Origin: Thalia democratica
Taxonomy: Eukaryota
Length of the DNA stretch: 64,000 nucleotides
Assembly (NCBI GenBank): GCA_965202585.1
Contig: OZ241827.1
Coordinates: 61,318,001 to 61,382,000, forward strand
Direction: 5' to 3'
Shown here: positions 18,714 through 41,500 of the stretch, piece by piece
Numbering within the stretch: the first letter of the stretch is position 1
Layout: every line of letters begins with the position of its first letter
The notes under the pieces: model-generated
Told to the model about the DNA's origin: nothing
What the model saw: only the letters and a program-made list of their open reading frames with translations
Databases searched by the model: none
Translations under genes and position numbers: made by a program

Positions 18714-19943
18714 TCAATTCAGATTTATTTTAATTGTAAGTTAAATATCTATTAATACTATTATAATAGAAATTAATTCAGTAAAAAATGAACAACGTTT
18801 ACGCAGTTATTTTTGACAACACAAAAAATATATCAAAAATAAGAATGATTCCAGTAAAATTTTCCAAAAATTTTCAATTTGAACGCTCAAAGTTAAGCAA
18901 AGTATTTAAATAAATTTAGTGATATGATTGACAAGAAACTGTTTATACATAATTTACTTTAACTAAAACGTTGAGAAGGGTCTATAACTGAAGGTTTATT
19001 TTTGGCATTGATGTTGAAGTTACAAAAAATAAGATAAATTTTCATAATTTATATTTTAGGTCAAGTGCTTAAATAAGTAAAGTCACTGTCTTTAATTAAT
19101 AAACATTCACTATATAAGCTTTTAATAAGGATATTTTCACAATTAGTTATTTTCATATACAATAAATAAATTGAGTTATAGTTTTCCTTATTTAATATTT
19201 ATTTGCAGTTTGCATTGGGTGGCTTTAAAAAATCAAATGGTGCCTGCGTGAAAGTTTCTTCAAGTCATCCAAAAATTTTCACAGGAAGTTGTTGTAATGT
19301 TTGCCAATTGCAATAAAAACTAGCTGAAAACACAATATTCGCTGTTTTTATAAGCACCTTACTGTACAAAGTTGTTTAAAAATTTGAAAATTATTAAAAA
19401 TGAAAACAATGGTATACTCACAATTCCCATCCAAATTTTTTTTTCACTTCTTTTCCTCTTTATTTATTTTCTTATTTTTTTGACCTTAATCCTTACCCTG
19501 TACTTTTATTCATACCAATTTTCTTAATAAATTATTTTCAACTACAACTAAGCGTGTCCCGAAAATAATACATATATTTGACCTACTATTAACAACTATT
19601 AAGGTAATTGGCTATCATTAAAATTTTCGAATGGAATTAAATAGTCTTGAAAGTTATTTTTACGCAAAACGTTACCTTTGTAGCATAATAAGCTGGATAC
19701 GTCAACTACATCAGGTGTTGTCCCACCACATTCTGCCTTTAGATCAGTGTTGGAAGCGTAACCACTTTCACATCTAAAGTCAACCTGGGTACCTTGTTCA
19801 ATTGGTAGATTAGGTGGTGATCCGTTTACTGTTGCCGTGGCATAATCAACTGAAGGAATACTGCTGAACTCTGTGACAAAAGTCAATTATATTAAAGATA
19901 AAATATTACCGGAAAGAGTCAGATGAAACTTTTTATTAAAGGT
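18714..19943 (-). repeat. Dispersed duplicate of the main gene's exon R and flanking intron (source 45221-45785 plus 46690-47434)
   Basis: tcaattcagatttattttaattgtaa at 18714/45221; homology ends at ttattaaaggt 19943/47434. Confidence 0.92.
19676..19870 (-). pseudogene. Orphan CCP exon R' (copy of 47166-47360), first Cys changed to Phe
   Basis: 195 nt, phase 1-1, AG/GT intact; EFSSIP versus ECSSIP. Confidence 0.75.
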
Positions 19944-20056: not shown

Positions 20057-20381
20057 CTATATATTATGTTTGTTAAAACCTGAAATTTTATCTCGCAGTT
20101 TTATCTCGCAAAGACCAAACTTTTGGCCACATTTAATTTCTAACGAGCATCGTTGGTCGTTCATAATCAGTGGGGCCATAAAACTGACATATGCACAGTG
20201 CTGGTTGTTATTTACACCGTTATTTGGCTCATTTGCGGCCCACGAAAACAAGTTTCCAGCCATATAAGTGTCGAACACCTCATCTGTAGCTGAAGATCCC
20301 GGTTTTCGCCACTCGCCCTCAACTAATTCATCGGTCAGTCCGATCCACGCTGAATTAACCAGGACCAAATCCCTGATTTCT
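20057..20381 (-). CDS. CTLD C-half terminal exon L1 (intact)
   Basis: EIRDLVLVNSAWIGLTD..EPNNG..HCAYV..MND..C..GLCE; phase-2 acceptor aaacag|A GAA; AATAAA at 20018-20023. Confidence 0.8.
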
Positions 20382-20766
20382 CTGTTTTTTTATTTTCAGA
20401 TTTACGCGGTAATAAAGTTCAAATGAACCCGCTGTGATTTTTTGCGGTAAAAGAGATGAAGAAAAAATCAAGCATGTTAGTTGAATTTAATTTTATATGC
20501 AAAGTTGTGTACGTCCGATGTTACTCAAATTTTTTTTCTTGTTGTTAGTTTGCTAACTAAACCAAAGCTTAAGTTGTTTGTTATATTCTTAGGATGTGTT
20601 ACTTAAACAGTGAAAAACACATAATTGATCGAGATTTTTTAAGCTGGTAAAAAAAAGAAATATTTTTTACCGTTAACAAGTATTTTCACACTAATTCAAG
20701 TCATGATCAAGTTGTTAAACGAAATGTTTTTTTTCAATAGACATATATATTTAAAATACAATTTAC

Positions 20767-20890
20767 GGGTGATATATTTTCCCGTCGGGTCCTAAGTTTT
20801 CATATATTAGGTCTCCATTCAATCTTTGACATTGCTCCCGAGCCTGGTTAAACGTACCCATTTTTCTCGTTAAGCTGAACTCGTATTCCC
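20767..20890 (-). CDS. CTLD N-half exon N1 (intact, 124 nt)
   Basis: cacag|..GEYEFSLTRKMGTFNQAREQCQRLNGDLIYENLGPDGKIYHP|gtaaat; phase 1-2, in frame with L exons. Absent from the ORF track. Confidence 0.82.
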
Positions 20891-21107
20891 CTGTGAGTTG
20901 TTAGTGAGTCAAAAATTATTCAATAAAAAACCAACATATTAAGCATTTTGGTCAAGGTAAACTTTAGTAACAAAGGTTTTAATTTATACAAATTAAGCTT
21001 TTATTTGGTCGTTATGTTTATGTGGTTTATTTCGTAATTATGCTTTTTATGTTGGTGAAACTAAAAACCTTAATTTAATTAATGATTTTTAACTTGAAAT
21101 ATACTCA

Positions 21108-21250
21108 TCAATTAGTGATCTTTAGATTAATAAAGTACAAAAACTGGTAATTTGAATCATCGCAAGCGTATCTAGTCATGGTGTAGTCAGTAAAGTCTAG
21201 TTCTACGATTTTCACATTGAAATCGTCCGAGGTTGGTAGGAGAGGACAAA
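21108..21250 (-). pseudogene. CCP stub exon C1 with its splice acceptor deleted
   Basis: CPLLPTSDDFNVKIVELDFTDYTMTRYAC..; the ttatttag acceptor seen in C3/C5 is missing (about 9-nt deletion). Confidence 0.65.
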
Positions 21251-22289
21251 AACAGTTGTTTAAAATTTAATAGTTTTAACACATTGTTGAAACATGCTTG
21301 TGTTTATCTATAGGCTGTAGATTATACAAATTTAACCGGATGACACCGGATGTAGAGCGCGCAAAATAAAAAGATACAAATATTGAAATAAAGAAAAGAA
21401 AGATAGAAGTAATAAGTTTATGCCACCGAATGTTCTATGTTCAAATAGACCAAAACTGGAAGTTGTTGCTGGAGGACAGCTTGTCTGCTACAGTATGCGT
21501 AAACTTATGAGTATGGCACGCTAACAACTCAAATCGAGCTGTTCGCCCCGTCGACATTGCTAAAGTAGGTATACAAAGTGTATATAGAACAAGATGTAAA
21601 AACTACGAAGTTATGAAGTAAAGTACAAAGTAAATGTTCTAGATAAACAAACAAATACTTGAATAAGAAGGATTTTCCGGAGATCATCTAGCTTTTCTAA
21701 GATGGCGGCTTACGCTCAAAGCGCCAAGAGACGTGGAACTGCTTTCTTCTTGACATGAAGTCGGTAAAACTTGCTCTCTCATTCGCTCGGCTGCTTATGT
21801 ACACCTCGTTTGCATAACAGTTCCGCATGATCAAGGCATGGTTCTAATTATCTAATTATAACATGCTGGTAGAAGCATGATACCCGGCGTGATTGTTAGT
21901 TTACTCTCCATGGCATTTAGGAAATTGCGTCAACTAACTTAACTAGCGATTGTTATTATTTGTTCGAAACAATGTTTTAAAAAAACAAATTGTTTTTATT
22001 TGAACTATTATTAAACGAAAACAATTTAAAAATTAAATTATTTATTAACTAACTCGACATTTTGACTATCGAAGCGAAAACAATAAATTTTTCAGGTCGA
22101 TGTCAAATATCGACTTTTTTTTTTTTAATGAGTAAGCTTTATGAAAGCAAACAAATAGTATCATACTTCTCAAAAAGTCGTTTAGTTCAATCTGTAGAGT
22201 TTAAATTTAAAACTTTATTTTAAGAACAATTAGTGATAGAAAAATAATAAAAAAGAATAAAAAATTTTAGAAAATAAACTAAACATTAT

Positions 22290-22760
22290 AAATATAAAGT
22301 TTAATTTAAACCTCAACTTATAGGAATTACGAGATGCTCCATAATCAAGTATCACAAAATATACTTGAAATTTAAATCAAATTACAAAGGGGATTCATCT
22401 AAATTGTATTAAGTACATTTTTTTGATAAAAATAAACTAATCATGATAAATAAAAAGTTCAATTTAAACCTCAACTTAAACGAATTACGAAAAGCTCAAC
22501 GATCAAACATATTTTATTATATGTTTGATTCAAAACTAATTTTTTCTGAAAAATTAGCTTCCTTATTTATACTACTTTTATGATTTATGTCAATCTGCAA
22601 CACCTCCTTAACACTTAAGAAAAAGACAACAATAAAGCATCACAAAATATAAATTAAAATAAAAACGATATTCATTCAAATTGCATTAAGCACATTTTCG
22701 ATAAAATACATCATAAAGTCCATCAATTTAGATATAAAGTTTAATTTAAACCTCAAGTTA
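22290..22760 (+). repeat. Three copies of aaagtttaatttaaacctcaacttaa-type motif downstream of gag (also about 30345-30810)
   Basis: Motif at about 22297, 22455 and 22737. Confidence 0.6.
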
Positions 22761-24101
22761 AGTGAATTAGTAAGAGCTTTAATTTTATTCTGAACTTTTT
22801 ATTATAAGGTCTACTAACGTAATTTTTTTTCGGTGACGCTAATAGTTATTACTGTTACCATGGTTTTGGTAACGATTATCAAGTTCGTGCCTATAACTAC
22901 CACCGTTACAAAAATTTTGGTTTCGATATTAAAATTTCGAACGAAGTATCTAGAAAAATTAATGCAATTTTGATTTCGATTGTTAAAGTTACGCCCGTAA
23001 TTATTACTATTACCGTAGTTTTGGTAACGCTTTTAAAAGTTCTGTCTCAAGTTACCGCTATTGTCATAACTTTGTTTAACATACCTGTCATTGCCGCTAT
23101 TGTGACGCCCATTATGTCGTTGATGGCCTTGGTTTTTTCTTGACTTGTTATAATTGACTGGTGGATCGGATACAGGAGGGTCGTCACTTTGGTGTGACCG
23201 CATAGTCTGTACGCGGGGTTTAAATTGTATAAGATCTATTACAACATATTTTTCGATCCTGCTCTTCAAAGAACTAGGAGCATGATATTATAAAAAGAAC
23301 TTAATACGGTTATCCTCATGAGCTGTTGCACATTCGGTAGCCTCGGCCAAACACGCGCTAAACGAAGTAGAGCTCGTATGTATTGGAAGTTTGCTGAGAA
23401 TTGGCGTAAAGGGACAGTTACGTATTTCAAAAAATTCTTCGAATGAAAATTTTGTTTTTCAGGGTTGACTGTCGTATAGTATTGTGACACCTCGTCGGAA
23501 ACCCATTTTATGTTATATTTCGTGTGATCATCTGTCACATTGAGTCGCTCAAATTCTCCGACGAAGTAATTCAGGGTTTGGCGTGGTGTAGTAATTTTAG
23601 TGAAACGGTGAAATTTACGTGTAAGCTTATCTGCGCTAGTTTCTTTATTAAAAACACTGCCGTCGTTGACGTAAATCAGAAGAAGAGTTTTTTTTATCGT
23701 TCTAATGTTCTAATTATTTCATTAACATTTTTTAACGACGTTTGATGACTGTACGCCGTTAAATGTTCAAAACTGTTCGGTGCGACATAGTTTTGGCGCA
23801 TTTTTTGTTTATTAATGGTCTTCGTTTTCGTTGTGTATTCGTTAATGTTATCGAAAGGTAGTGGATCGTAGCGTTGAAGGATGCCATTATAACCCTCAGC
23901 TCTTGCTACTAACACTTTCTTTTCGTCTGATATCGATTTGTGTTGTTCTGATATCGCTTTGTGTTGGTGAGATATGTTAGTCCGCTCAGGGTTTATAGTT
24001 GGTATGTGGTAACTAGCGTCCAAACCATCTTCAGCATCGGTAACTAACCTCGAGCGGTCGTATACTGACACAGGTATGGATCTCTTGCTGCTAGCACTCA
24101 T
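22753..24101 (-). pseudogene. Degenerate Ty3/Gypsy-like gag (copy 1), no pol
   Basis: Several frameshifts and stops; motif NYFVGEFERLNVTDDHTKY..PDEVS..SFKEFFERR resembles invertebrate Gypsy gag N-termini; Asn-rich tail. Confidence 0.55.
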
Positions 24102-25049
24102 CCTCAAATAGAATGATTAGTGCTACTAATCGTGTTAGTGAGTGTGCGTTACAATTAACAGCTTTTACAAAAGGTTTAATATAATCTAGCCTATAAATAA
24201 ATGCTTAATTAAGCTTAAATAGGTTAAATTCTAGTTAGTAAACAACTATTCTAGTTAATACTAGGTAGTAAAAACGTTTTACAACGTTCATCACAAATTT
24301 TTTAAATAAGTTTTCAGTTCTAAACGGTATCTTTTTTTTAAATTACTTTTGCTACTTTATAACTTTCCTTAACAGTTTTTTCTGATGAGTCTGTAGTTAC
24401 AAATGATAACTATGTTAAAACTGATTTAAGCAATTTTTTTTTCGTTTCTCGCAATAAATCCCAACTAAAGTTTTTTATTCCTATAGCTCGTCTTGTGTAT
24501 CACATTTACTGTTTTTAAATGCAATATGTATTTTTATTGCAGATAAAAAATTGCTAGAATGCTCAATAGAAAATAAGTTTTTCTACTTCATAAATGGCTT
24601 AATAAATTTTATACATTTATTAAAAATATTTATAAAACTTAGTTTTTCATTAAAGCTGACTTATAAATACTTTTTTAGCTATATAACAAGTTCACTCTTA
24701 ACAAACTTCGACATTTCTTTATTTTCTGAATTTTATTTTAAATACAGATGCCAAACAAACAGGCTAGTTTTAAAATTTTTTAAAACGTCGAATTTTATGA
24801 CTGTGGTGTAGTTTACTAACTGTTTTTTTTTGTCTACTTACATATTGCAATTTTATTGCAATTATTGTTTGTATTTATCGGCATTTTTAATGAGTATTGA
24901 CTCAATAAAACAGATCAACTAAGCATATATTTTTTTATTAGTCTGAAAAATAAATAATCGATGAATTTATTTAAAAAAAGTTTTTGTTTTTCAATGACAA
25001 AAAAAATAGTTTCAAGATAGTATGTTATGGTAATTAAATCACTCTTTTG

Positions 25050-25400
25050 TTTTAATCAATCTTACCAGGAAAAAAAAATGTCGTATTGTGTGAGAGGGTA
25101 GAAGATATTCGCTTAAAACTGAGCAGATTTAATTCAAATAGATTAAAATTCAGTAACTTTCCACAAAGATAATAAGAAGAAAATAAGTAAATAATTCCTT
25201 TATATTAATTATCTCAACTAAACTAACTACTGATTTCATCATATTTCTATTTTTGATACTAATTAGTTTTATTTCCCTACGTCTCCCCCTAATAGAATAC
25301 TATTTTAATATTAGTAATTTGTACTACGTTTTCACCTTTTATATTAAGCAAATAGGTTTAAACTTTTTATTGAGTTTTTATAACTTTAGCTATGTTTGAT
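25050..25400 (+). mobile_element. CR1-like LINE 3' fragment
   Basis: Aligns with 53240-53600 (ttacca..tgtga.agggt.gaa..ttaaaact; ttccctacg.ctccccctaa). Confidence 0.6.
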
Positions 25401-25462
25401 GATCAGTACTTTGTACTTAAGCCCGCTTGGTTAAGTTCACAATAGCGGTTTATCGCAACTAT

Positions 25463-25505
25463 TCCTGCCTGATTAGCCCTAATTAGGACGAAACCGGTCG
25501 TAGGA
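25463..25505 (+). ncRNA. Minimal type I hammerhead ribozyme, degenerate (Penelope-type)
   Basis: tcctgc-CTGATTA-gccc-taatta-ggac-GAAA-ccg-GTC-gtagga; 6-bp stem I; core G8 replaced by U. Confidence 0.7.
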
Positions 25506-27040
25506 TTGTCTCGGATGCTGTTGATCTTGCGGTAAAGCTCATTAATTATTACTGATGGCGCGAAACATCTCAACTCTGTTGATGATGGCCGTAATAACTA
25601 CTGGTTATTTTTAAAAGGTAATTTTTAAAAAATTACTCGTCTCATACTAGTATTGTTTGTCACAAAGCAGCATACTGTTTTTACATGTAAATTTACTCTT
25701 AAACACAATAGTTTGCAACTAAAACTAATTTTCATTTGTATATGATTATGTTATTTTGATATAATTTACTTTATCATTAAATTTAGTCATAGTTTCAGTA
25801 TAGCCTTTTTAATATATGTTTTAAATAATGAAAGCCGGTTAAATAAAAAAGCTTTCTACCCCTGCAACAAACTTGTGATGTTTAAAAAGACCACCAGAAA
25901 ATATCAGATGGCTTATTGAGATTAACAATAAATTTATTATTACTCGCCAACAAGATTGTGCAAATTTAGTTTATGTCGTTTAAATCGTTAATTTAGTACA
26001 TTTAAAAAAGTGGTTTGAATACTGATTTCTACAACTAAAAAAAAATTAAGTGACTAGTTTACAAATAAATATAAAATAGTTTTACCCTACTTTACTTGTT
26101 TGAAATAAAAATAAGTAGTTGCTATCATTATGCGGTGCTAAACATACTTTGTTTAGGTAACCTTGAAGTGTACAACTACTTCTATTCTTATGAAGCACAA
26201 TTTAAGCTTAAAGAGATATATCAGAACAATAAAATTTATTACAAGTATTAAACAAAAGGTTGGTATTATATACTGTAGGCTAGAAGTAAACGTATTCTAC
26301 CGCAGACCGTTTACTGTTTTAATAAAAATAGAAATTGTTTTAAAAAACAATCAAGTACTACTGAAATATTTTTAAAGCCAAATAGCTTCTACCACTTAAA
26401 AAAAAAAGTACTATATTATTATTCTCTAAATAAACTTTATATATTTAGGTTGTTTCAATAAAAAATATGTCCAACGCCTTGTATTTAAGTTTGCTTTAGG
26501 AGTATAAATACAATAAAGGAGTGCATCATTGAGGAACTTTTAAATGTTTAGTATTAGCTAATTTTAAATAAGAAATAAATAATTTAAGCACAGTAAAGCT
26601 GTTTTGTGCACAAGTGTATCTTACGGGATAAAACAACTAAAATATCTCAAACGAGAAAGCTAAATAAAATCTTGTTTTCAATGTACAGCAGACAAACATG
26701 CATATAGCTCTTAATTTGAGATTTCAAACAAATGCAATAAAAAAACCTTACAAAACATTTAGACTAAACTAAAATATTACACAGTACTACGATGACTTAT
26801 TAGGTAATTTAAAGAAGAAAAAATGTTTTACACTAGCATTACAATGATATATATCTAACAAGATTTAAACAAAACTTTAAAAACTAAAAAAATACAGAGC
26901 TATAAAATCTAAATAAAAAAAAGTACAAAGTTTTATTATAAGGAACAAAAACAAAAAAATCTAAAAACACAAACTCATAAAATAAATACAAAACAGCAGC
27001 ACCAACAAGTGCTGTGCTCTGCTACGCACAGCTCAATTTT

Positions 27041-27323
27041 TTACTCTTCGGGCGGTTTTATCTCGCAGAGACCCAACTTTAAAGGAATCGAGCAATGATT
27101 GTCGTCCATACCCAGCCGTCCAAACTTCAAACGGACATACACGCAGTTTTGGATGGTGTGTTCGCCGCCGTCGTTTGGCTCACCCGAGGCCTACGAGAAC
27201 AAGTTTCCGGCCATTTCAGTGTCAAACATCTCATCTGATTCCGGTTTCCGCCACACGCCCTCAACTAATTCGTCGGTCAGGCCGATCCACGCTTCCTTAT
27301 CCAGGACCAATTTTCTGATTTCT
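27041..27323 (-). pseudogene. CTLD C-half exon L2 with premature stop
   Basis: Paralog of L4; TGG to TAG at 27191-27193, upstream of EPN. Confidence 0.85.
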
Positions 27324-28084
27324 CTGTTTATTTTACTTTGAGATTTACGCTGTAATACAGTTAAAATGAATCGCTGTGATTTTTTTTTGGTAAAAGAGAT
27401 GAAGAAAAAATCAAGCATGTTAGTTGGATTTATTTTTATATGCAAAGTTGTGTACGTCCGATGTTACTCAAATTTTTTTGATGTCGTTAGTTTGCTAACT
27501 AAACCAAAACTTAAGTTGTTTTTTATATTCTTAGGATGTGTTAGTTTACTAGTGAAACACACAAAATTGATCGAGATTTTTAAGCTGGTAATAAAAGAAA
27601 TATTTTTACTGTTAACAAGCATTTTTACACTAACTCATGTCATAATCAAATTGTATAACATAATGCTGTTATGTTTTAAAGACAAATATATTTAAAATAA
27701 AACTTACAGCTTTTCACTGTACAGCAGACAAACATGCAAATAGCTTTTAATTTTAGATTTTAAACAAATGCAATAAATAACCTTATAAAATATTCTAGTC
27801 TATACTAAAACACTCTACAGTGTTACGATGACTTATTAGGTAATTTAAATATGAAAAAATGTTTTACTACAGCATTTTAATGATATATATCTAACTAGGT
27901 TTAAACTAAACTTTAAAAACTAAGAAAAAAATACAGAGCCATAAAATCTAAATGAAAAAAAAGTACAAAGTTTTATTAAAAGGAACAAAAACAAAATAAT
28001 TTAAAAACAGGAGCTCATAAAACAAATACAAAACTTCAACACCTTCAAGCGCTGCGCTCTGCTTCGCACAGCTCAAATTTCTTT

Positions 28085-28421
28085 TCAATCTTCGGGCGGT
28101 TTTATCTCGCAAAGACCAAACTTGTCGCCCGAGTAAAAAGATGAGCATGTTCCAGCCGGAACATCGGTGCAGCAGTTGGTGTCGTCCATATTCAGTGGGC
28201 CTTTGTAACCGACATACACACAGTCCTGGTCAACTGCGCTGTTCCCATTAACGCGGCCGTTATTGGGCTCAGGCCATACCCACGAGAACAAGTTTCCATT
28301 CATTTCAGTGTCAAACTTCTCATCTGAAGCTGAAGATCCCGGTTTCCGCCACACGCCCTCAACTAATTCGTCGGTCAGGCCGATCCACGCTGGATTATCC
28401 AGGACCAAATCCCTGATTTCT
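28085..28421 (-). CDS. CTLD C-half terminal exon L3 (intact)
   Basis: 337 nt; WIGLTD, EPN, MDD, GLCE; phase-2 acceptor; AATAAA at 27972-27977. Confidence 0.8.
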
Positions 28422-28809
28422 CTGTTTATTTTTTACTTTGAGATTTACGCTGTAATACAATTAAAATAAATCCGCTGTGATTTTCTTTTAGTAAAAGAGA
28501 TGAAGAAAAAATCAAGCATGTTAGTTAAATTTAATTTTATATGCAAAGTTGTGTACGTCCGATGTTACTCAAATTTTTTTGTTGTTGTTAGTTTGCTAAC
28601 TAAACCAAAGCTTAAGTTGTTTATTATATTCTTAGGATGTGTTAGTTAAACAGTGAAAAACACAAAATTGATCGAGATTTTTTAAGCTGGTTAAAAAACG
28701 AAATATTTTTTACCGTTAACAAGTATTTTTACACTAATTCAAGTCATGATCAAGTTGTTAAACGAAATGCCTTTTTTCAATAGACATATATATTTAAAAT
28801 ACAATTTAC

Positions 28810-28911
28810 GGGTGATATATTTTCCCGTCGGGTCCTAAGTTTTCATATATTAGGTCTCCATTCAATCTTTGACATTGCTCCCGAGTTTCGTTAAGCTGAA
28901 CTCGTATTCCC
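28810..28911 (-). pseudogene. CTLD N-half exon N3 with 22-nt frameshifting deletion
   Basis: 102 nt versus 124 nt in N1 and N5; cctggttaaacgtaccc.. is missing. Confidence 0.85.
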
Positions 28912-29128
28912 CTATGAGTTGTTAGTGAGTCAAAAACTATCCAATTACAAACAAACATATTAAGCATTTTGGTCAAGGTACAATTTTAGTAACGAAGGTT
29001 TTAATTTATACAACTTAAGCTTTTATTTGGTCGTTTTATTTATGTGGTTTTTTTCATAGTTATGCTTTTTACGTGGTGAAACTAAAAACCTTAATTTAAT
29101 TAATGATTTTTAACTTGAAATATACTCA

Positions 29129-29271
29129 TCACTTAGTGATGTTTAGATGAATAAAGTACAAAAACTGGTAATTTGAATCATCGCAAGCGTATCTAGTCAT
29201 GGTGTAGGCAGTAAAGTCTAAATCTACGATTTTCACATTGAAATCGTCCGGGGTTGGTAGGAGAGGACAAA
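29129..29271 (-). other. CCP stub exon C3 (half module ending in a stop)
   Basis: ttatttag|VCPLLPTPDDFNVKIVDLDFTAYTMTRYACDDSNYQFLYFIHLNITK*. Confidence 0.6.
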
Positions 29272-30803
29272 CTAAATAAAACTGTTGTTCAAAATCCAAT
29301 AGTTTTAACACAGTGTTGAAACATGCTTGTGTTTATCTATAGGCTGTAGATTATACAAATTTAACCGGATGACACCGGATGTAGAGCGCGCAAAATAAAA
29401 AGATACAAATGTTGAAATAAAGAAAAGAAAGATAGAAGTAATAAGTTTATGCCACCGAATGTGTAGGCTTATACGTTGAGTTCTATGTTCAAGTTGACCA
29501 AAACTGGAAGTTGTTGCTGGAGGACAGCTTGTCTGCTACAGTATGCGTAAACTTATGAGTATGGCACGCTAACAACTCAAATCGAGCTGTACGCCCCGTC
29601 GACATTGCTAAAGTAGGTATACAAAATGTATATAGAATAAGATATAAAAACTACGAAGTTATGAAGTAAAGTACAAAGTAAATGTTTTAGATAAAAAACA
29701 AATACTTGAATAAGAAGGATTTTCCGGAGATCATCTAGCTTTTCTAAGATGGCGGCTTACGCTCAAAGCGCCAAGAGACGTGGAACTGCTTTCTTCTTGA
29801 CATGAAGTCGGTAAAACTTGCTCTCTCATTCGCTCGGCTGCTCATGTACACCTCGTTTGCATAACAGTTCCGCATGATCAAGGCATGGTTCTAATTATCT
29901 AATTATAACATGCTGGTAGAAGCATGATACCCGGCGTGATTGTTAGTTTACTCTACATGGCATTAAGAAAATTGCGTCAACTAACTTAACTAGCGATTGT
30001 TATTATTTGTTCGAAACAATGTTTTAAAAAACCAAATTGTTTTTAAATTAATTATCATTAAACGAAAAAAAATTAAAATTAAAATTATTAATTAACTAAC
30101 TCGACAATTTAACTATCGAAGCGAAAACAATAAATTTTTCAGGTCGATGTCCAATATCGACTTTATTTATTTTTTTTTTTCTAATGAGTAAGTTTTATGA
30201 AATCAAACAAATAGTATCATACTTCTCAAAAAGTCGTTCTATTCAATCTATAGAATTTAAATTTTTAACTTTATTTTAAGAACAATTAATGATAGAAGAA
30301 TAAAAAAGAAGAATAAAAAATTCAGAAAATAAATAATCATTATAAAAGTTTAATTTAAACCTCAACTTAAACGAATTACGAGATGCTCCATAATCAAGTA
30401 TCACAAAATATACTTGAAATTTAAATCAAATTACAAAGGGGACTCATCTAAATTGTATTAAGTACATTTTTTTGATAAAAATAAACTAATCATGATAAAT
30501 AAAAAGTTCAATTTAAACCTCAACTTAAACGAATTACGAGAAGCTCAACGATCAAACATATTTTATTATATGTTTGATTCAAAACTAATTTTTTCTGAAA
30601 AATTAGCTTCCTTATTTATACTACTTTTATGATTTATGTCAATCTGCAACACCTCCTTAACACTTGAGAAAAAGACAACAATAAAGCATCACAAAATATA
30701 AATTAAATTAAAAACGATATTCATTCAAATTGCATTAAGCACATTTTTTCGATAAAATACATCATAAAGTCCATCAATTTAGATATAAAGTTTAATTTAA
30801 ACC

Positions 30804-32160
30804 TCAAGTTAAGTGAATTAGTAAGAGCTTTAATTTTGTTCTGAACTTTTTATTATAAGGTCTACTAACGTAATTTTTTTTCGGTGACGCTAATAGTTAT
30901 TACTGTTACCATGGATTTGGTAACGATTATCAAGTTCGTGCCTATAGCTACCACCGTTACAACAATTTTGGTTTCGGATATTAAAATTTCGAACGAAGTA
31001 TCTAGAATAATTAATGCAATTTTGATTTCGATTGTTAAAGTTACGCCCGTAATTATTACTATTACCGTAATTTTGGTAACGCTTTTAAAAGTTCTGTCTC
31101 AAGTTACCGCTGTTGTCATAACTTTGTTTAACATACCTGTCATTGCCGCTATTGTGACGCCCATTATGTCGTTGATGGCCTTGGTTTTTTCTTGACCTGT
31201 TATAATTGACTGGTGGATCGGATACAGGAGGGTCGTCACTTTGGTGTGACTGCATAGTCTGTACGCGGCGTTTCAATTGTATAAGATCTTCTACAACATA
31301 TTTTCGATCCTGCTCTTTAAAGAACTAGGAGCATGATATTATAAAAAGAACTTAATACGGTCATCCTCATGAGCTGTTGCACATTCGGTAGCCTCGGCCA
31401 AATACGCGCTAAACGAAGTAGAGCTGGTATGTATTGGACGTTTGCCGAGAATTGGCGTAAAGGGACAGTCACGTCTTTCAAAAAATTCTTTGAACGATTG
31501 AAAATTTTGTTTTTCAGGGCTGACTGTCGTATAGTATTGTGACACCTCGTCGGGAACCCATTTTCCGACCATAATGTTATATTTCGTGTGATCATCTGTC
31601 ACATTGAGTCGCTCAAATTCTCCGACGAAGTAATTCAGGGTTTGGCGTGGTCTAGTAATTTTAGTGAAACGGTGAAATTTACGTGTAAGCTTATCTGCGC
31701 TAGTTTCTTTATTAAAAACACTGCCGTCGTTGACGTAAATCGGAAGAAGAGTTTTTTTTTTTGTTCTAATGTTCTAATTATTTCATTGACATTTTTTAAC
31801 GACGTTTGATGACTGTACGCCGATAAATGTTCAAAACTGTTCGGTGCGACATAGTTTTGGCGCATTTTTTGTTTATTAACGGTCTTCGTTCTCGTTTTGT
31901 ATCCGTTAATGTTATCGAAAGGTAGTGGATCGTAGCGTTGAAGGATGCCGTTATAACCCTCAGCTCTTGCTACTAACACTTTCCTTTCGTCTGATATCGA
32001 TTTGTGTTGTTCTGATATCGCTTTGTGTTGGTGAGATATGTTAGTCCGCTCAGGGTTTATAGTTGTGGTAACTAGCGTCCATACCCTCTTCAGCATCAGT
32101 AACTAACCTCGAGCGGTCGTATACTGACACAGGTATGGATCTCTTGCTGCTAGCACTCAT
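30804..32160 (-). pseudogene. Degenerate Ty3/Gypsy-like gag (copy 2)
   Basis: Duplicate of 22753-24101 and better preserved; joined frames give TLNYFVGEFERLNVTDDHTKYNIMVGKWVPDEVSQYY..FKEFFERR. Confidence 0.55.
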
Positions 32161-33199
32161 CCTCAAATAGAATGATTAGTGCTACTAATCGTGTTAGTGA
32201 GTGTGCGTTACGATTAACAGCTTCTACAAAAGGTCTAATATAATCTAGCCTATAAATAAATGCTTAATTAAGCTTAACTAGGTTAGATTCTAGTTAGTAA
32301 ACAACTATTCTAGTTAATACTAGATAGTAAAAACGTTTTACAACGTTTTACAACGTCCATCACAAATTTTTAAAATAAGTTTTCAGTTCTAAACGGTATA
32401 TTTTTTTTAATTACTTTTGCTACTTTATAACTTTCCTTAACAGTTTTTTCTAGTCAGTCTGTAGTTACAAATGATAACTATGTTAAAACTGATTTAAGCA
32501 ATTTTTTTTTTCTTTTCTCGCAATAACTCCCAACTAAAGTTTTTTATTCCTATAGCTCGTCTTGTGTATCACATTTACTGTTTTTAAATGCAATATGTAT
32601 TTTTATTGCAGATAAAAAATTGCTACAATGCTCAATAGAAAATAAGTTTTTCTACTTCATAAATGGCTTAATAAATTTTATACATTTATTAAAAATATTT
32701 ATAAAACTTAGTTTTTCATTAAAGCTGACTTATAAATATTTTTTTAGCTATATAACAAATTCACTCTTAACAAACTTCGACATTTCTTTATTTTGTGAAT
32801 TTTATTTTAAACACAGATGCCAAACAAACAGGCTAGTTTTAAAATTTAAAAAACTCAGACTAGGTTAAACATTTTCTAAACCTCAGGTGTAGGTGAAACT
32901 TTTATTTCAAAAGCTTTGAATAAAACGTCGAATTTTATGACTGTGGTGTAGTTTACTAACTGTTTTTTTTGTCTACTTACACATTGCAATTTTATTGCAA
33001 TTATTGTTTGTATTTATCGGCATTTGCAATGAGTATTGACTCAATAAAAGAGATCAACTAAGCATATATTTTTTCATTAGTCTGAAAAATAAATAATCGA
33101 TGAATTTAATTGAAAAAGTTTTTGTTTTTCAATGACAAAAAAATAGTTTCAAGATAGTATGTTATGGTAGTTAAATCACTCTTTTGTTTTAATCAATCT

Positions 33200-33540
33200 T
33201 ACCAAGAAAAAAAATTAAATGTCGTATTGTGTGAGAGGGTAGAAGATATTCGCTTAAAACTGAGCAGATTTAATTCAAATAGTATAAAATTCAGTAACTT
33301 TCCACAAAGATAGTAAGAAGAAAATAAGTAAATTATTTCTTTATATTAATTATCTGATCTAAACTAACTACTGATTTCATCATATTTCTATTTTTGATAC
33401 TAATTAGTTTTATTTCCCTACGTCTCCCCCTAATAGAATATTATTTTAATATTAGTAATTTGTACTACGTTTTCACCTTTTATATTAAGCAAATAAGTTT
33501 AAATTTTTTATTGAGTTTTTATAACTTTAGCTATGTTTGA
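33200..33540 (+). mobile_element. CR1-like LINE 3' fragment, duplicate
   Basis: Duplicate of 25050-25400. Confidence 0.6.
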
Positions 33541-33603
33541 TGATCAGTACTTTGTACTTAAGCCCGCTTCGTTAAGATCACAATAGCGGTGTCTCGCGAC
33601 TAT

Positions 33604-33646
33604 TCCTGCCTGATTAGCCCTAATTAGGACGAAACCGGTCGTAGGA
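33604..33646 (+). ncRNA. Minimal type I hammerhead ribozyme, degenerate duplicate
   Basis: Identical to 25463-25505. Confidence 0.7.
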
Positions 33647-34767
33647 TTGTCTCGGATGCTGTTGATCTTGCGGTAAAGCTCATTAATTATTACTGATGGC
33701 GCGAAACATCTCAACTCTGTTGATGATGGCCGTAATAACTACTGGTTATTTTTAAAAGGTAATTTTTAAAAAATTACTCGTCTCATACTAGTATTGTTTG
33801 TCACAAAGCAGCATACTGTTTTTACATGTAAATTTACTCTTAAACACAATAGTTTGCAACTAAAACTAATTTTCATTTGTGTATGATTATGTTATTTTGA
33901 TATAACTTACTCTATCATTAAACTTAGTCATAGTTTCAGTATAGCCTTTTTAATATATGTTTTAAATAATGAAAGCTGGTCAAATAAAAAAGCTTTCTAC
34001 CCCTGCAACAAACTTGTGCTGTTTAAAAAGACCACCAGAAAATATCAGATGGCTTATTGAGATTAACAATAAATTTATTATTACTCGCCAACAAGATTGT
34101 GCAAATTTAGTTTATGTCGTTTAAATCGTTAATTTAGTACATTTAAAAAAAGTGGTTTGAATACTTATTTTTACAACTAAAAAAAAATTAAGTGACTAGT
34201 TTACAAATAAATATAAAATAGTTTTACCCTACTTTACTTGTTTGAAATAAAAATAAATAGTTGCTATCATTATGCGGTGCCAAACGTACTTTATTTAGGT
34301 AACCTTGAAATGTACAACTACTTCTATTCTTATGAAGCACAATTTAAGCTTAAAGAGATATATCAGAACAATTAAATTTATTACAAGTATTAAACAAAAG
34401 GTTGGTATTATATACTGTAGGCTAGAAATAAACGTAGTCTACCGCAGACCGTTTACTGTTATAATAAAAATAGAAATTGTTTTAAAAAACAATCAAGTAC
34501 TACTGAAATATTTTTAAAGCCAAATAGCTTCTACCACTTAAAATATATAAAAAAGTCATTTATTATTATTCTATAAATAAACTTTATATATTTAGGTTGT
34601 TTCAATTAAAAATATGTCCAAAGCCTTGTATTTAAGTTTGCTTTAGGAGTACAATAAAGGAGTGCATCATTGAGTAACTTTTAAATGTTTAGTATTAACT
34701 AGTTTTAAATAAGAAATAAATAATTTAAGCACAGTAAAGCTGTTTTGTGCACAAGTGTATCTTACGG

Positions 34768-34917
34768 CAGTACTTCTGAAATGGGGTTCCTTTCGAAATT
34801 AAAAAAAAAAACATTTATTTAATTAAACATTTTATGTAAAATTAAAATTAGGGGTTCCGCGGAAAAGTTGAACTGTGGAAAAGGGTTCCGCCACTAGAAA
34901 AAGGTTCAGAAGCACTG
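34768..34917. mobile_element. 150-bp hAT (Charlie-type) MITE
   Basis: TIR cagtacttctgaa / ttcagaagcactg; 8-bp TSD tcttacgg (34760-34767, 34918-34925); empty site in the paralog near 26620. Confidence 0.93.
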
Positions 34918-35338
34918 TCTTACGGGATAAAACAACTAAAATATCTCAAACGAGAAAGTGAAATAAAATCTTGTTTTCACTGTACAGCAGACAAACATGC
35001 ATATAGCTCTTAATTTGAGATTTCAAACAAATGCAATAAAAAACCTTACAAAACATTTAGACTAAACTAAAATATTACACAGTACTACGATGACTTATTA
35101 GGTAACTTAAAGAAGAAAAAATGTTTACACTAGCATTATAATGATATATATCTAACAAGATTTAAACAAAACTTTAAAAACTAAAAAAATACAGAGCTAT
35201 AAAATCTAAATGAAAAAAAAGTACAAAGTTTTATTAAAACGAACAAAAACAAAATAATCTAAAAACACAAACTCATAAAATAAATACAAAACAGCAGCAC
35301 CAACAAGCGATGTGCCCTGCTACGCACAGCTCAATGTT

Positions 35339-35621
35339 TTACTCTTCGGGCGGTTTTATCTCGCAGAGACCCAACTTTAAAGGAATCGAGCAATGATTGT
35401 CGTCCATACCCAGCCGTCCAAACTTTAAACGGACATACACGCAGTTTTGGATGGTGTGTTCACCGCCGTCGTTTGGCTCACCTGAGGCCCACGAGAACAA
35501 GTTTCCAGCCATTTCAGTGTCAAACACCTCATCTGATTCCGGTTTCCGCCACACGCCCTCAACTAATTCGTCGGTCAGGCCGATCCACGCTTCCTTATCC
35601 AGGACCAATTTTCTGATTTCT
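35339..35621 (-). CDS. CTLD C-half terminal exon L4 (intact)
   Basis: 283 nt; EIRKLVLDKEAWIGLTD..EPND..NCVYV..MDDNHC..GLCE; AATAAA at 35230-35235; no N-half exon of its own. Confidence 0.8.
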
Positions 35622-36077
35622 CTGTTTATTTTACTTTGAGATTTACGCTGTAATACAGTTAAAATGAATCCGCTGTGATTTTTTCGGTAAAAGAGATGAA
35701 GAAAAAATCAAGCATGTCAGTTGGTTTTAATTTTATATGCAAAGTTGTGTACGTCCAATGTTACTAAATTTTTTTGTTGTTGTTAGTTTGCTAACTAAAC
35801 CAAAACTTAAGTTGTTTATTATATTCTTAGGATGTGTTAGTTTACTAGTGAAACACACATAATTGATCGAGATTTAAAAGCTGGTAATAAAAGAAATATT
35901 TTTACTGTTAACAAGTATTTTTACACTAACTCATGTCATAATCAAATTGTATAACATAATGCTGTTATGTTTTAAAGACAAATATATTTAAAATAAAACT
36001 TACAGCTTTTCACTGTACAGCAGACAAACATGCATATAGCTTTTACTTTTAGATTTCAAACAAATGCAATAAATAAC

Positions 36078-37865
36078 TAGTGATGTACCGGACTCACTAT
36101 CCGGGTCCGGGTCCGGCCGGATATTGCCATTTTTGTCTGATATCCGGATCCGGCCGGATTCTAATTTGAAAAAAAAGTCCGGATCCGGTTCCGGCCGGAT
36201 TTTAATTTGAAAAAAAAGTCCGGATCCGGTTCCGGCCGGATTCTAATTTGAAAAAAAAGTCCGGATCCGGGTCCGGCCGGATCCTAACAGAGATCCGGCC
36301 GGACCCGGATCTAGTTAGTAAAAAAGAGCATACTGAAAAGTATTTTTCCAAAAACAAACCCTGTGTAAATTAATAAGAGTCATTTTCGTCAGCTAAAATT
36401 AAACATCTACCGTGATTGGCTCATTTTGTACATGTGACTAATTTACATTTGTTTACATTTAAACTATGAAATAAACATTTCAGAAATGCAGCTCATTACA
36501 TATGCAGTAAAATTGAAAACTTTGGAATAAATACTTGCATTATTTATTGTTTAAAGTTGAGCTCAGAGAATATTTAGAGTTAATACGGTTGAATGTAAGA
36601 TCCGATGAGAATCATATGACAAAATGTTTCAAACTAAATACTGACACAACAAAACATCAGAACATGACAGGCAGTTTATATGTAAGCAGTTAGTTAATTT
36701 GGTGTGCAGCTTGAAGCAACAAAATATCTTGAACTTTTTTGTGAATGTTTATTGTAAGTAGTGTTTTGTTTTAAAAGTGAATAATTCAACTGGTGTTTAA
36801 TTGTTTAAATATTTAAGCCAGGTTTGTAGTTTAATAGTTTATTAAAAATTTAACAGTTTCTTGTTTACTAAAAGTTTTATTTTATTTTTAGTTTATTGTT
36901 TTAAGTCTTTTGAGATAGATTTAAATAGCTTCCAGTTTTTAAAGTGTTACCAAAGTAATTAATAGTTTTGTATATGCTAGTATTTCTTATTGTGTTTTAT
37001 ATAAAAGATTCATCACTCAAAACTGTCGTGTCTGATTATAGAAAGTAGTCTCAGTTAGAATTTAGAATTTGTTAGATATTAGTTAAATAAGGTAGGATTT
37101 AACTATGATGGGTAGTACTAATAGGTTAAGTGTACCACAATCAGTACACAACTTTACTACCAAATTGTCAACCCTTGCTAGCTGTTCTACTGATTATTAG
37201 ATTAAAGTAATTTTTTCAGTTTTTAAAAACCTCATTCTGACTCAGGCTTGTTTATATTCACTCTAGCTAGTTTTATTGACTTAAACAGTGGCAACCCTGC
37301 TAGTTAGAAAATTTTTGGGAATTTTAGAAATCTTGGACTGCCTCAGGCTAGTTTAGTTTTTTATAAAAACTCAGGCTAATTTTCTTTTAGATTTTGAATG
37401 AGTTTGAGCTGATCCAGTTTTCAATAGTTTGTAGTTTTCTAGTGTATTTTGTTCAAGAACTTGATTTCAGATTTTTAATTGTAAATAAAACCTAAATTTG
37501 TAAACCTTGTGGCTAGCTGTTCTAACTTTTATTAGATTAAAGTTTTTTTTTTCAGTTTTTAAAAACCTCATTCTGACTCAGGCTAGTTTATACTAGTGAT
37601 GTATTGGACTCACTTTCCGGGTCCGGGTCCGGCCGGATATTGCCATTTTTGTCTGATATCCGGATCCGGCCGGATTCTAATTTGAAAAAAAAGTCCGGGT
37701 CCGGTTCCGGCCGGATTTTATTTTGAAAAAAAGTCCGGATCCGGTTCCGGCCGGATTCTAATTTGAAAAAAAAGTCCGGATCCGGTTCCGGCCGGATTCT
37801 AATTTGAAAAAAAGTCCGGATCCGGGTCCGGCCGGACCCGAAATTGTGGGTCCGGTACATCACTA
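36078..37865. mobile_element. 1,788-bp composite hAT-like element
   Basis: TIR tagtgatgtaccggac / gtccggtacatcacta; 8-bp TSD taaataac (36070-36077, 37866-37873); empty site at about 27773-27781; internal ~41-bp CCGG-rich tandem repeats. Confidence 0.92.
37594..37865. mobile_element. Inner 272-bp MITE (second left end plus shared right end)
   Basis: tagtgatgtattggactcac.. repeats the 36078 left arm. Confidence 0.85.
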
Positions 37866-38173
37866 TAAATAACCTTATAAAATATTCTAGTCTATACTAA
37901 AACATTCTACAGTGTTACGATGACTTATTAGGTAATTTAAATATGAAAAAATGTTTTACTACAGCACTTTAATGATATATATCTAACTAGGTTTAAACTA
38001 AACTTTAAAACTAAGAAAAAAATACAGAGCCATAAAATCTAAATGAAAAAAGTACAAAGTTTTATTGAAAGGAGCAAAAACAAAATAATTTAAAAACAGG
38101 AGCTCATAAAACAAATACAAAACTTCAACACCTTCAAGCGCTGCGCTCTGCTTCGCACAGCTCAAATTTCTTT

Positions 38174-38510
38174 TTAACCTTCGGGCGGTTTTATCTCGCA
38201 AAGACCAAACTTGTCGCCCGAGTAAAAAGATGTGCATGTTCCCACCGGAACATCGGTGCAGCAGTTGGTGTCGTCCATATTCAGTGGGCCTTTGTAACCG
38301 ACATACACACAGTCCTGGTAAACTGCGGTGATCCTATTAACACGGCCGTTATTGGGCTCAGGCGGTACCCACGAGAACAAGTTTCCATTCATTCTAGTGT
38401 CAAACACCTCATCTGAAGCTGAAGATCCCGGTTTCCGCCACTCACCCTCAACAACTTCGTCGGTCAGGCCGATCCACGCTGGATTTTCCAGGACCAAATC
38501 CCTGATTTCT
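38174..38510 (-). CDS. Terminal CTLD C-half exon L5
   Basis: WIGLTD, EPN, MDD, GLCE; stop TAA; AATAAA at 38061-38066. Confidence 0.87.
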
Positions 38511-41500
38511 CTGTTTTTTTATTTTCAGATTTACGCGGTAATAAAGTTCAAATGAATCCGTTGTGATTTTTTGCGGTAAACGAGATGAAGAAAAAATTAA
38601 GCATGTCAGTTGGATTTAATTTTATATGCAAAGTTGTGTACGTCCGATGTTACTCAAAAAATTGTTGTTATTTTGCTAACTAAATCAAAACTTAAGTTGT
38701 CTGTTATATTCTTAGGATAGGTTAGTTAAATAGTGAAACACACAGAATTAATCGAGATTTTTAAAGTTGGTAAAAAAGAAATATTTTTTATCGTAAAAAA
38801 GTACTTTCACACAAGTTCAAGTCATTATCAAGTTGTCAAACGAAATGCTGTTTTGTTTTATAGACATACATATATATATATATTTAAAATACAACTTACG
38901 GGTGATACATTTTCCCGTCGGGTCCCAAGTTTTTATATATTAGGTCTCCACTCATTTCTTGACATTGCTCCCGAGCCTGGTTAAACGTACCCTTTTTTTT
39001 CGTTAAGCTGAACTCGTATTCCCCTGTGAGTTGTTAGTGAGTCAAAAATAATTCAATAAGAAACCAACATATTAAGCATTTTCGTCAAGGTACAATTTTA
39101 GTAAAAAAGGTTTTAGTTTATACAAATTAAGCTTTTATTTGGTCGTTATGTTTATGTGGTTTATTTCGTAATTATGCTTTTTATGTTGGTGAAACTAAAA
39201 ACCTTAATTTAATTAATGATTTTTAACTTGAAATATACTCATCAATTAGTGATGTTTAGATGAATAAAGTACAAAAACTGGTAATTTGAATCATCGCAAG
39301 CGTATCTAGTCATGGTGTAGTCAGTAAAGTCTAGTTCTACGATTTTCACATTGAAATCGTCCGGGGTTGGTAGGGGAGGACAAACTTAATAAAACTGTAG
39401 TTTAAAATCCAATAGTTTTAACGCATTGTTGAAACATGCTTGTGTTATCTATAGGCTAAAGATTATACAAATTTTAACGTTTAAAATTTTTATAAAAAAC
39501 TCTAAAAAAGCAATAGTTTTGGTTCAAACTTTTTTTGTTTGTTGTTTTTTGCTTACTTTTAACGCATTCTGCGTTTTCTGACCACCCATCTACAGTGCAT
39601 GTAGTATAGTTGCTTCCAGAAATACGTATAAATCCTTGATTACATTCGTAAGTTATTTTGACGCGCCGTACAAGCTGATCTCCTAAATATCTCTCTTCGA
39701 TATTATAAGATGCATTAGGTATTGCTGGACACCTCACATCTATTTTTTATCAATAGTGTCACATACAGAAATAAAAACTAATACAAACATCTCAAGTGTT
39801 AAAAAACTCTACACATACTAAGTAGAAATTTAATCTTTTATGTAAATAACAAGATTAGTACTTTCATGACATTCCGGTGTTGGTATTTCACAGAGCACAT
39901 TCATTTCAAACGTAGAGCTTCGGTCGATTAACATTTGTTGTTTTGAGAGGGTTACGTAGTCTTCAGCAGGAAAAACGTGGTTGGGCTCACCAAATGTCCA
40001 AGTGTACTTCACATCTTCTTCTTTTGTCGGCGTCTCACCGTGATCCTTGATTCTTGAATCTTTATCTGTCTCGTACGCTATTGAGTTGTCTGACACAAAC
40101 TTGAAGACTTGTTCGGTTTCCGAATCACTTATACCGGTCCAGCACTCCCAGGTGAAACCTGATAGAGTGTTTTCTATCACACTGTAAAAAACATTAGCGT
40201 CAATATTTTTGAAAAAGAATGCAATAAAACTTTAGTTAACCCGAAAGAGCAGTGACGGAGTTATCGGAACTGCAACTTATACTGGCTGTTAAATATTTTG
40301 ACTCTGTAATTATTTTTTGTCGTAGATATTTTAGATTGCTTGCTTTAATTAAACTCATTCAAAAGAAATTATGAACATTAAACATACAATGTTTGTTCGT
40401 TCCGATACTAACACTATATAAAGGACCGTTGAGCAATTTTATTCGGGCCGCTACTTATGTTTAGTTAAAAAAGTTTGTAGTATACAAATAAACATAAAAA
40501 ATCATTAAAATTACAAGTTTGATATAAATTAAGTTTTAAGTAAACTTTAAGGCTAATTACATTGTTACATGGCAGACTGAGACCGGTTTCGTCCTTATTA
40601 GGACTCATCAGTCACTCACAACCAAAAAACTTGCAGTCATCACAGACTGATGAGTACCAATAAGGAGAATCCGGTCTCAGTCTACCGAAGGCTTGTGGTC
40701 TGATGATCTAATCGGCATGATCAAACCTTATGTTAAACATGAGCTTGTCTTACGGCATACGAAAGTCCACGCTTAGCCTCTGTAGACTTTCGCCGATGTT
40801 TTCGTTGTTAGAAATAACTAAATCAATAAAATAACTTATTATTTTTGCAAGAAGTGACATAGTTTACATTTCACATATAAGCTTAAAGTCAATGGAGAAA
40901 AACAGTAAATTAAAGTTGGTATATACTTATTAATAAAATAATTTGTTTTATATTATTTATTCGACAGCTTTGCGTCGCATTACAACATTTTCGACTGAAA
41001 TTAAAAACAATAAAGCTAAGTAAAATAATTATCAAAAAAATTCGAAATGTACCCAAAAAGTTAATACGAAAATAACCTAATTAGAAAAACTTTATCTTAA
41101 TTAAATACTCCTGATATTTGTTAAATCTTAATGATTATATTTTCTATACAGCACCTCTCCCTGAAAACCATTTTTTTTATTAACTGTTTTTGTATTTTAC
41201 AACCTAAGGTAGAAACTTCCATAACTGAGTTTATAAACTGCATAAAAGTGTAAAATAAATTCTCATTAGAGATTCAAACTAAACAAGTTCGTTAAAATGT
41301 AACAATAATTTTGTACTTAGTTCAAAAAAGCAATTACTTTTTACAACTGAGAAATTAAGTGGGTTTATCAAAGTTTTTAGTGCAGTTCATATAAATACTT
41401 ACCTGTTTAAAAATATTATGCTATTTTATATACTAAGCTTAGATAAAAGTCTCCTATATTTCCAAGTTTTAATGCAAAAGTGACCAAAGTTTAACAACAA

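Follow-up and report, generated by a model that had tools for sequence, protein, structure and literature searches.

A hypervariable terminal lectin exon and its tandem copies behind a CCP stalk in Thalia democratica

Can a single gene carry several sugar-binding heads on one stalk, and if extra heads lie behind it, how did they get there? The question is raised by a 64,000-nucleotide stretch of the Thalia democratica genome (contig OZ241827.1, positions 61,318,001 to 61,382,000; hereafter the window, numbered from its first letter), in which a minus-strand gene built from CCP (sushi) exons is followed by several copies of the exons for its terminal C-type lectin domain (CTLD). The initial annotation had proposed that these copies form an alternative-3′-end system, with one CCP scaffold joined to interchangeable lectin heads. 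We find that the half of the terminal exon that would bind ligand diverges far more than the DNA around it, and we consider it rather probable that the locus is explained by a hypervariable head exon at which unequal crossing-over stacks divergent heads in cis, with the youngest copy decaying.

The window is AT-rich (~30% GC). A scan for the CCP pattern identified ~19 CCP exons on the minus strand between 63737 and 39564, in agreement with the ~19-CCP scaffold first described; the 5′ end of the gene falls outside the window, so this count is a minimum. The predicted product has a stalk of 19 or more CCP domains, with a C-type lectin domain at its end. The CCP run includes an internal CTLD (N half at ~41773–41657, C half at 40180–39870), after which come one further CCP and then the terminal CTLD. 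The exon for the last constant CCP scores 28.8 bits against Pfam Sushi (PF00084; cut-off 20.7), which places it in the family, and no membrane-anchor exon was found after the lectin domain in the window. Blocks of CCP exons within the stalk are themselves recent duplicates (48278–49770 versus 58432–59922, and 48471–48853 and 58625–59007 versus 59922–60301, both at 92–98% identity); stalk length therefore appears to be in flux as well.

The terminal lectin domain is divided between two exons: an N exon that encodes the framework and a terminal L exon with the WIGL and EPN motifs, the loops and the stop codon. The exons nearest to the stalk, N5 and L5, align to residues 424–448 and 478–545, respectively, of one CTLD repeat of P0010, an insect mannose-receptor-like protein. 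N and L are therefore predicted to form one lectin domain, in which L would carry all of the sugar-binding determinants. The L half aligns to residues 56–119 of the carbohydrate-recognition domain (CRD) of Mincle, including WIGL, EPN and the acidic pair of the Ca2+ site, and the CRDs of Mincle, DC-SIGN and SP-D in the PDB match it at E values of 0.001–0.1. Scored as half a domain, the L halves reach 15–22 bits against Lectin_C (Pfam PF00059; cut-off 22.6) and the N half alone is likewise under the cut-off; a related contig, L038, has a precomputed Lectin_C match. All of the head types keep WIGLTD, EPN(N/D), MDD or MND and C...C...CEI, the motif set of a CTLD, in which WIGL, four framework Cys and EPN with an acidic/Asn pair at the Ca2+ site are expected.

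The lineage is also seen in Tara Oceans metagenomes, and our comparison contigs (0.5–3 kb) come from marine metagenomes. Two of these, L038 and L039, contain one N and one L exon with a ~200-nt intron between them in the equivalent place, and the N/L split is therefore a feature of the family. Because only 16 proteins among 1.84 billion representatives match at E ≤ 0.001, the lectin subfamily seems to be restricted to this lineage. A pattern scan of the metagenome contigs for the WIGLTD-coding motif returned 31 loci, all of them GC-rich bacterial chance matches.

The copies of the L exon differ most where the lectin would contact its ligand. Between head types (L5/L3, L4/L2, L1 and the head of metagenome contig L002), identity is 86–91% in the N–L intron, 86–92% in the 3′ untranslated region (UTR) and 80–88% in the 5′ half of the L exon, and it drops to 69–78%, with many in-frame length changes, in the 3′ half, which extends from after NLFSW through the loops to CEIK. 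The excess over the flanks corresponds to odds ratios of 2.5–3.5 (Fisher p 3e-4 to 5e-7). Such a peak of divergence at ligand-binding codons relative to non-coding flanks, which is also present in contigs L001, L041 and L043, is the pattern expected of diversifying or balancing selection, and neutral decay cannot give divergence above that of the flanks. Synonymous divergence (dS) is 0.6–1.3 in the 3′ half versus 0.12–0.34 in the 5′ half, values that are inflated by uncertain codon alignments in the loop region. Decay of CpG sites was ruled out as the cause of the fast exon divergence, as CpG observed/expected is ~1 in the exons; because dS is raised in the 3′ half while CpG is undepleted, a mutational explanation seems unlikely. 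Between L3 and L5, 21 of 337 exon sites differ as against 4 of 308 in the UTR, with a dN/dS of 1.35. This amino-acid excess is best read as descent of L3 from a different L5 variant, and selection after the duplication is not required.

Contigs from other samples place further heads in the same surroundings, here compared with the duplicated units that contain L5, L3 and L1 (units 5, 3 and 1, or U5, U3 and U1). Contig L001, from independent DNA, is 99.2% identical to the L5 locus, and all six of its differences from L5 lie within the exon, with none in 393 nt of flanks. L041 combines a 98% U5-type intron and a UTR without differences (0/87) with a binding half that differs from L5 at 11 of 196 sites; the differences include W45, G55–N56 and D60, the loop residues that separate L3 from L5. 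L043 has a U5-type intron (95–98% in two alignments) and a 5′ exon half at 98.6% identity, followed by a 3′ half at 70% and a different UTR, and is a mid-exon mosaic. In L005, a head of the P0003 type follows an intron that is identical to that of U5 over its first ~120 nt and 87–89% identical over the whole stretch; L005 and L001 come from one sample and have these ~120 nt in common, as alleles or paralogues. At least seven head types occur on one framework. With a binding half that diverges 2.5–3.5 times more than its flanks and other heads in L5-like flanks, these comparisons support the earlier proposal of variable lectin heads on a constant stalk, apparently at the level of copies, haplotypes or samples. 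As a separate observation, all three DNA runs that best match the window read CA for GG (plus strand) at 38364–38365, which changes Pro45 of L5 to Trp, the residue of L3 and L041; this shared polymorphism adjoins the EPN motif.

Patchy variation confined to the exon, the mid-exon mosaic and L5 variants with the states of other cassettes would also be produced if the downstream cassettes were unexpressed and served as a germline gene-conversion reservoir for L5, in the style of pseudo-V donors, in which even broken copies could donate loops. The loop residues W45, G55–N56 and D60 of L3 recur in contigs with a 98% U5-like intron, as such a reservoir predicts, but the same pattern would arise if L3 descends from another L5 allele at the crossover, and for the most divergent heads (P0003, P0038 and P0039 types) no tract could be traced to a donor in the window. 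Germline conversion between tandem copies is, moreover, generic and does not imply a selected reservoir. We consider a reservoir of this kind unlikely.

The metagenome contigs also bear on the second cassette, L4. Two of them, L002 (~88% identical to unit 5) and L004, have a single L exon that leads directly into the flank that follows L4 in the window, so the L5+L4 pair appears not to be universal. The flanks of L5 and L4 differ by 14%, and those of metagenome variants differ from unit 5 by 2–13%; because the L5–L4 value is in the range of these variants, L4 may perhaps be a recently captured live head, whose intact frame says little about use in the second position. Contig L003, from independent DNA, is 96% identical to the L4 locus, and its protein (P0004) carries one amino-acid change. 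L003 was tried as an outgroup for constraint on L4 and set aside for having too few substitutions (3/283 in the exon versus 7/308 in the flank, p=0.34); it probably represents an orthologue of L4 instead.

How the cassettes came to be stacked can be read from the repeat structure. Self-BLAST of the window revealed a nested tandem repeat with a unit of ~8 kb (Table 1). Over 6 kb, comprising the spacer and the L4 and L2 units, identity between copies A and B is ~97%; it is 85–94% from the half-CCP relic through N and the N–L intron into the start of the L exon. At sites that discriminate between U5 and U1, unit 3 is U1-like up to ~38580 and U5-like from ~38440 (in U5 coordinates). It is therefore a chimera that takes its 5′ part from unit 1 and its 3′ part from unit 5, formed by one unequal crossover that duplicated the intervening DNA. 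A chimeric junction unit between evenly identical copies is what tandem duplication by unequal crossing-over (non-allelic homologous recombination) leaves behind. Three events followed the duplication: the 22-nt deletion in N3, the TAG in L2 and the insertion of a transposon, which is in copy A only. In copy B, N3 and L2 (two of three coding exons) are already dead at ~3% divergence, which argues against strong selection on every cassette; the youngest copy is decaying.

From these relationships a history in two steps may be proposed. In an older step, a partial unit (half-CCP relic, N1 and L1) would have been left ~8 kb downstream, and a very different L exon, L4, would have been placed directly behind L5. 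In a recent step, crossing-over between unit 5 and unit 1 would have duplicated the 8 kb between them, giving the chimeric unit 3 (N3, L3) and L2. Because diverged cores lie in young flanks, and cores and mosaics from other samples lie in these same flanks, the most likely origin of the array is that alleles or paralogues with divergent heads were captured in cis. The locus may be subject to diversifying or balancing selection and to frequent recombination or gene conversion. L5 would be the default terminal exon, and use of the downstream cassettes would be compatible by splice phase.

A more mundane origin would be an assembly in which two haplotypes of a single locus, joined in tandem through the homology of U1 and U5, appear as copies A and B. 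They differ by ~3%, their topology is as expected from a haplotype switch at a repeat, and exact copies of L3 (and of L1) were not found in the other data. Heterozygosity in marine invertebrates spans such values. Against this, the depth of the L4 contig is ~2.3 times that of neighbouring single-copy contigs in sequencing runs X1 (466 versus ~205) and X2 (321 versus ~140), as for collapsed L4 and L2. Expressed by organism, depth relative to single copy is ~2.3 in organism A and ~1.2 in B; the value for A fits a real duplication of L4/L2 and argues against an artefact there. U1 and U5 are only ~90% identical, which is too low to mislead long-read assembly, the window contains no N runs, and even an artefact would leave L5, L4 and N1–L1 in place. 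An assembly error is thus a very improbable source of the array.

The inventory of cassettes, with exon boundaries verified base by base, bears out the three N and five L exons of the initial annotation in coordinates, phases, stops and AATAAA signals, all on the minus strand (Table 1). Every L exon has the same acceptor, aacag/AGAAATCAG, in phase 2 and its own stop codon. AATAAA occurs 103–107 nt past the stop in L5, L4, L3 and L2 and 33 nt past it in L1, against a minus-strand background of 2.9 per kb. The homology that the units share sets in at 39478, 79 nt beyond the donor at 39557 (previously put at about 80 nt). As first proposed, the units begin within an intron, look promoterless, lie on the strand of the gene and match it in splice phase; reading of the exons likewise confirms that L4 is intact and has no N exon of its own. 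The exons of the proposed units stand, and the unit anatomy changes in three respects: the repeat unit is ~8 kb, the tail and UTR of L1 are non-homologous to those of the other cassettes, and each unit opens with a relic of half a CCP, which starts at 39384, 29271 or 21250 and has an acceptor in phase 1 but no donor in a compatible phase.

L1 stands apart from the other cassettes. Its tail, RDKISGFNKHNI (the last 12 codons), and the stop, AATAAA and UTR that follow are unrelated to those of other cassettes, and the tail, stop and UTR are breakpoint-derived. No close copy of L1 was found in public protein collections, where the best match has 61% identity. The displaced sequence directly behind L1 holds a CCP exon (within 19886–19599) whose first Cys is replaced by Phe (FVTEFSSIP versus FVTECSSIP). 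The possibility that L cassettes are internal domains spliced onward was ruled out, as there is no conserved donor past CEIK; a weak G/GTTAAA occurs in L5 only.

Table 1. Positions of the cassettes, repeat copies and associated features in the window
Feature	Position	Strand	Details
Last constant CCP (sushi) exon	39557–39739	-	183 nt, phase 1-1; acceptor tag/AT, donor A/gtaagc
Start of duplicated unit 5	39132–39478	-	Break at 39478; half-CCP relic 39384–39280 and intronic block 39371–39132
N5, N-half CTLD exon, intact	38900–39023	-	124 nt; acceptor cacag/GG phase 1, donor CC/gtaagt phase 2
L5, first terminal L-half exon	38174–38510	-	WIGL, EPN, MDD, CEIK, TAA; AATAAA 38066–38061
DNA transposon between L5 and L4 units	36078–37864		1.8 kb; target-site duplication of 9 bp GTTATTTAT; 15-nt terminal inverted repeats AGTGATGTACCGGAC
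L4, second terminal L exon, intact, short-loop head type, without own N exon	35339–35621	-	
N3, broken N-half exon	28810–28911	-	102 nt; 22-nt deletion shifts frame; donor gtaaat
L3, intact L exon of L5 type	28085–28421	-	Within the chimeric unit 3
L2, copy of L4, broken	27041–27323	-	In-frame TAG at 27193–27191
N1, intact N-half exon	20767–20890	-	Weaker donor gtaaat (N5: gtaagt); 7 amino-acid differences from N5
L1, intact L exon, third head type	20057–20381	-	Homology to other cassettes ends at 20095, just past CEIKL
Copy A	39478→29366		Relic, N5, L5, transposon, L4, spacer
Copy B	29365→21337		Relic, N3, L3, L2, spacer
Partial copy C	21336→~20100		Relic, N1, L1
Spacer of copy A	29366–34918		~5.5 kb, no recognisable gene; 94–98% identical to 21337–26626
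Displaced copy of 45220–47434	18713–19943	-	88–91% identity; directly behind L1

The architecture is that of an alternative 3′-terminal-exon array: 3′ of common exons lie several terminal cassettes, whose acceptors are compatible and each of which has a stop and a poly(A) signal. The exceptions are that L2 (TAG) and N3 (frameshift) are broken and that the stop and AATAAA of L1 lie in non-homologous sequence. A working system would splice N5 to L5, L4, L3 or L1, or the last CCP exon to N1–L1, and so give one scaffold several lectin heads in one animal. The identical phase-2 acceptors, the stop in every cassette and the AATAAA position kept in four of five would suit this use. So would L4, intact without its own N exon and present in another sample with a single amino-acid change; before the transposon arrived, its acceptor lay ~0.7 kb behind the poly(A) signal of L5. 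The strong diversification of the binding half shows, in addition, that head diversity matters for the gene. The state of the cassettes speaks against such a system: N3 and L2 were lost within ~3% divergence, L1 is without the family tail and UTR, N1 and N3 have the weaker donor, the 1.8-kb transposon now separates L5 from L4, and L002 and L004 pass from one L exon directly to the flank that follows L4 here. The intactness of L4 could be explained by the recent capture of a live allele.

Traces of cassette use were also sought in sequencing runs. The three runs that match best derive from DNA and have even coverage across introns. In the metatranscriptome X4, one contig of 191 nt (38291–38482) falls within the L5 exon, the only cassette with an RNA trace, and there is some depth on the L5 UTR; X4 has no depth at all over L4, N5, the introns or the last CCP exon, and no joints were seen. 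A search of sequencing runs with the L4 exon and UTR matched no RNA run, a weak negative with no species-specific RNA run among the data searched. Reads or contigs that join N5 or the last CCP exon to a downstream cassette were absent from the runs and contigs searched. One joint in X2 (36003 to 38930), with a shorter side of 22 letters, was judged to be a mapping artefact. With no junction observed and RNA coverage of L5 only, we regard a working alternative-3′-end system as doubtful.

The explanation that we favour, a hypervariable head exon with divergent heads stacked in cis, has points against it as well. L4, L3, N1 and L1 are intact and splice-compatible, which inert copies would not require. 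The L5-like contig of X4 differs by three mismatches and a 1-nt deletion, and X4 may contain DNA. Because the metagenome contigs are short, the other head types could be alleles here or paralogues elsewhere, and the depth of a contig with the U5 intron, ~2.6 times single copy in X1, hints at further copies. The inflation of dS in the loops and the weakness of the negative result for L4 belong on the same side.

One feature of the array stands out for its conservation. A 240-nt block in the intron after the last CCP exon (39371–39132, with copies near 29260–29020 and 21240–21000 and at 215–455 of L002) is 97–100% identical in the three units and L002, in an intron that is otherwise ~88% identical. 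Most of the half-CCP relic and the next ~150 nt belong to the block; changes within the relic are mostly non-synonymous, and the block is therefore not conserved as coding sequence. Folding of 39125–39390 gave Z-scores of -0.8 and +0.7 for the two strands, indicating no stable RNA structure, and no Rfam family was found at the gathering threshold over 18000–48000. One could imagine that heads are swapped in two ways: within an animal among the 3′ cassettes, in cis or by trans-splicing like that of mod(mdg4), helped by this block, and between animals by haplotype exchange or capture. Together these would provide an individually variable germline lectin repertoire at several loci, a combination that we consider quite improbable.

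Open reading frames in the spacers (31638–32096 and 23697–24107) have no credible relatives in Pfam or the Atlas and were treated as non-coding. The transposon in copy A is non-autonomous, has internal direct repeats of 212 nt and is absent at the equivalent U3/L2 junction; it reaches ~2000 times single-copy depth in the three DNA runs and is also found in the metatranscriptome. A second high-copy repeat (40424–40821; ~250 to 1000 times single-copy depth) lies in the intron of the internal lectin domain; Rfam at the gathering threshold matched no hammerhead there. Near the start of the window, a duplication of 5.2 kb (1–5219 versus 7551–12776; 98.9% identity) carries in each copy an intronless open reading frame of 595 amino acids on the plus strand (2723–4510 and 10268–12055), whose homologues among metagenome proteins of the ENA (27–35% identity) contain a PARP catalytic domain (PF00644). 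Between 13733 and 15056 lie satellite-like direct and inverted repeats (74–85% identity) with long spurious open reading frames on both strands.

At the level of the protein, the locus resembles EPN-type CRDs (Mincle, DC-SIGN and collectins) in its WIGL/EPN L half, and the CCP and CTLD mosaics of selectins and lecticans in combining sushi repeats with a CTLD. It differs from them in the order and number of domains and in having MDD or MND in place of WND.

At the level of the gene, the initial annotation had likened the array to the cassettes of Dscam and the protocadherins. These genes, like UGT1A, do have tandemly duplicated exons that potentially provide many specificities on one scaffold. 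However, Dscam cassettes are internal and mutually exclusive, between constitutive exons, whereas every L exon here ends in a stop and has no conserved donor. The variable exons of the protocadherins and UGT1A are 5′ exons, each with its own promoter, whereas the cassettes described here are 3′ of the constant CCP exons and start within an intron. The analogy was therefore misplaced, and lola or mod(mdg4) are closer models for terminal cassettes that each bring a stop and a poly(A) signal.

In lola and mod(mdg4) of Drosophila, common exons are joined to alternative 3′ terminal exons (PMC13490949). The likeness is that constant exons lie upstream and a row of terminal cassettes in one phase comes after them; each cassette has its stop and poly(A) signal and encodes a variable binding domain at the C terminus. 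On the side of likeness there is also the conserved block of 240 nt (97–100%) in the intron after the last constant exon. By comparison, the Thalia array has only five L cassettes, two of its eight N and L exons are broken, its copies are very young (flanks diverge by 3–14%), and it is known from DNA. Its variable part is an extracellular lectin half and not a zinc finger or FLYWCH domain, and it shows no sign of independent promoters or trans-splicing.

A parallel of another kind is found at the fuhc-linked Fester and FcoR loci of Botryllus, which are sushi-containing families with extreme polymorphism and copy-number differences between haplotypes; intergenic recombination diversifies them, and some modules are swapped by alternative splicing (PMC12582321). 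The present locus is comparable in that deeply separated head lineages lie in young flanks, mosaics occur and the number of cassettes varies from contig to contig. There is no homology, as the Botryllus proteins belong to the immunoglobulin superfamily, and the variants described here, known from sequence alone, are possibly alleles.

To our knowledge, few ways of generating recognition diversity are known in invertebrates: Dscam splicing, FREP, 185/333, VLR assembly and polymorphic allorecognition loci. The Thalia locus adds a lectin in which the sugar-binding half-domain has a terminal exon to itself. This exon undergoes duplication, exchange and diversification at a much higher rate than the DNA around it, which makes it a natural module for changing specificity while the stalk stays constant. 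Should the extra cassettes prove to be expressed, innate recognition would have in them its first lectin example of 3′ cassettes in the style of lola and mod(mdg4); should they prove silent, the locus would still illustrate clearly both the hypervariability of a head exon and the capture of divergent heads in cis by unequal crossing-over. On present comparison, its closest architectural analogue would be lola and mod(mdg4), and its closest evolutionary analogue would be polymorphic recognition loci such as Fester and FcoR of Botryllus.

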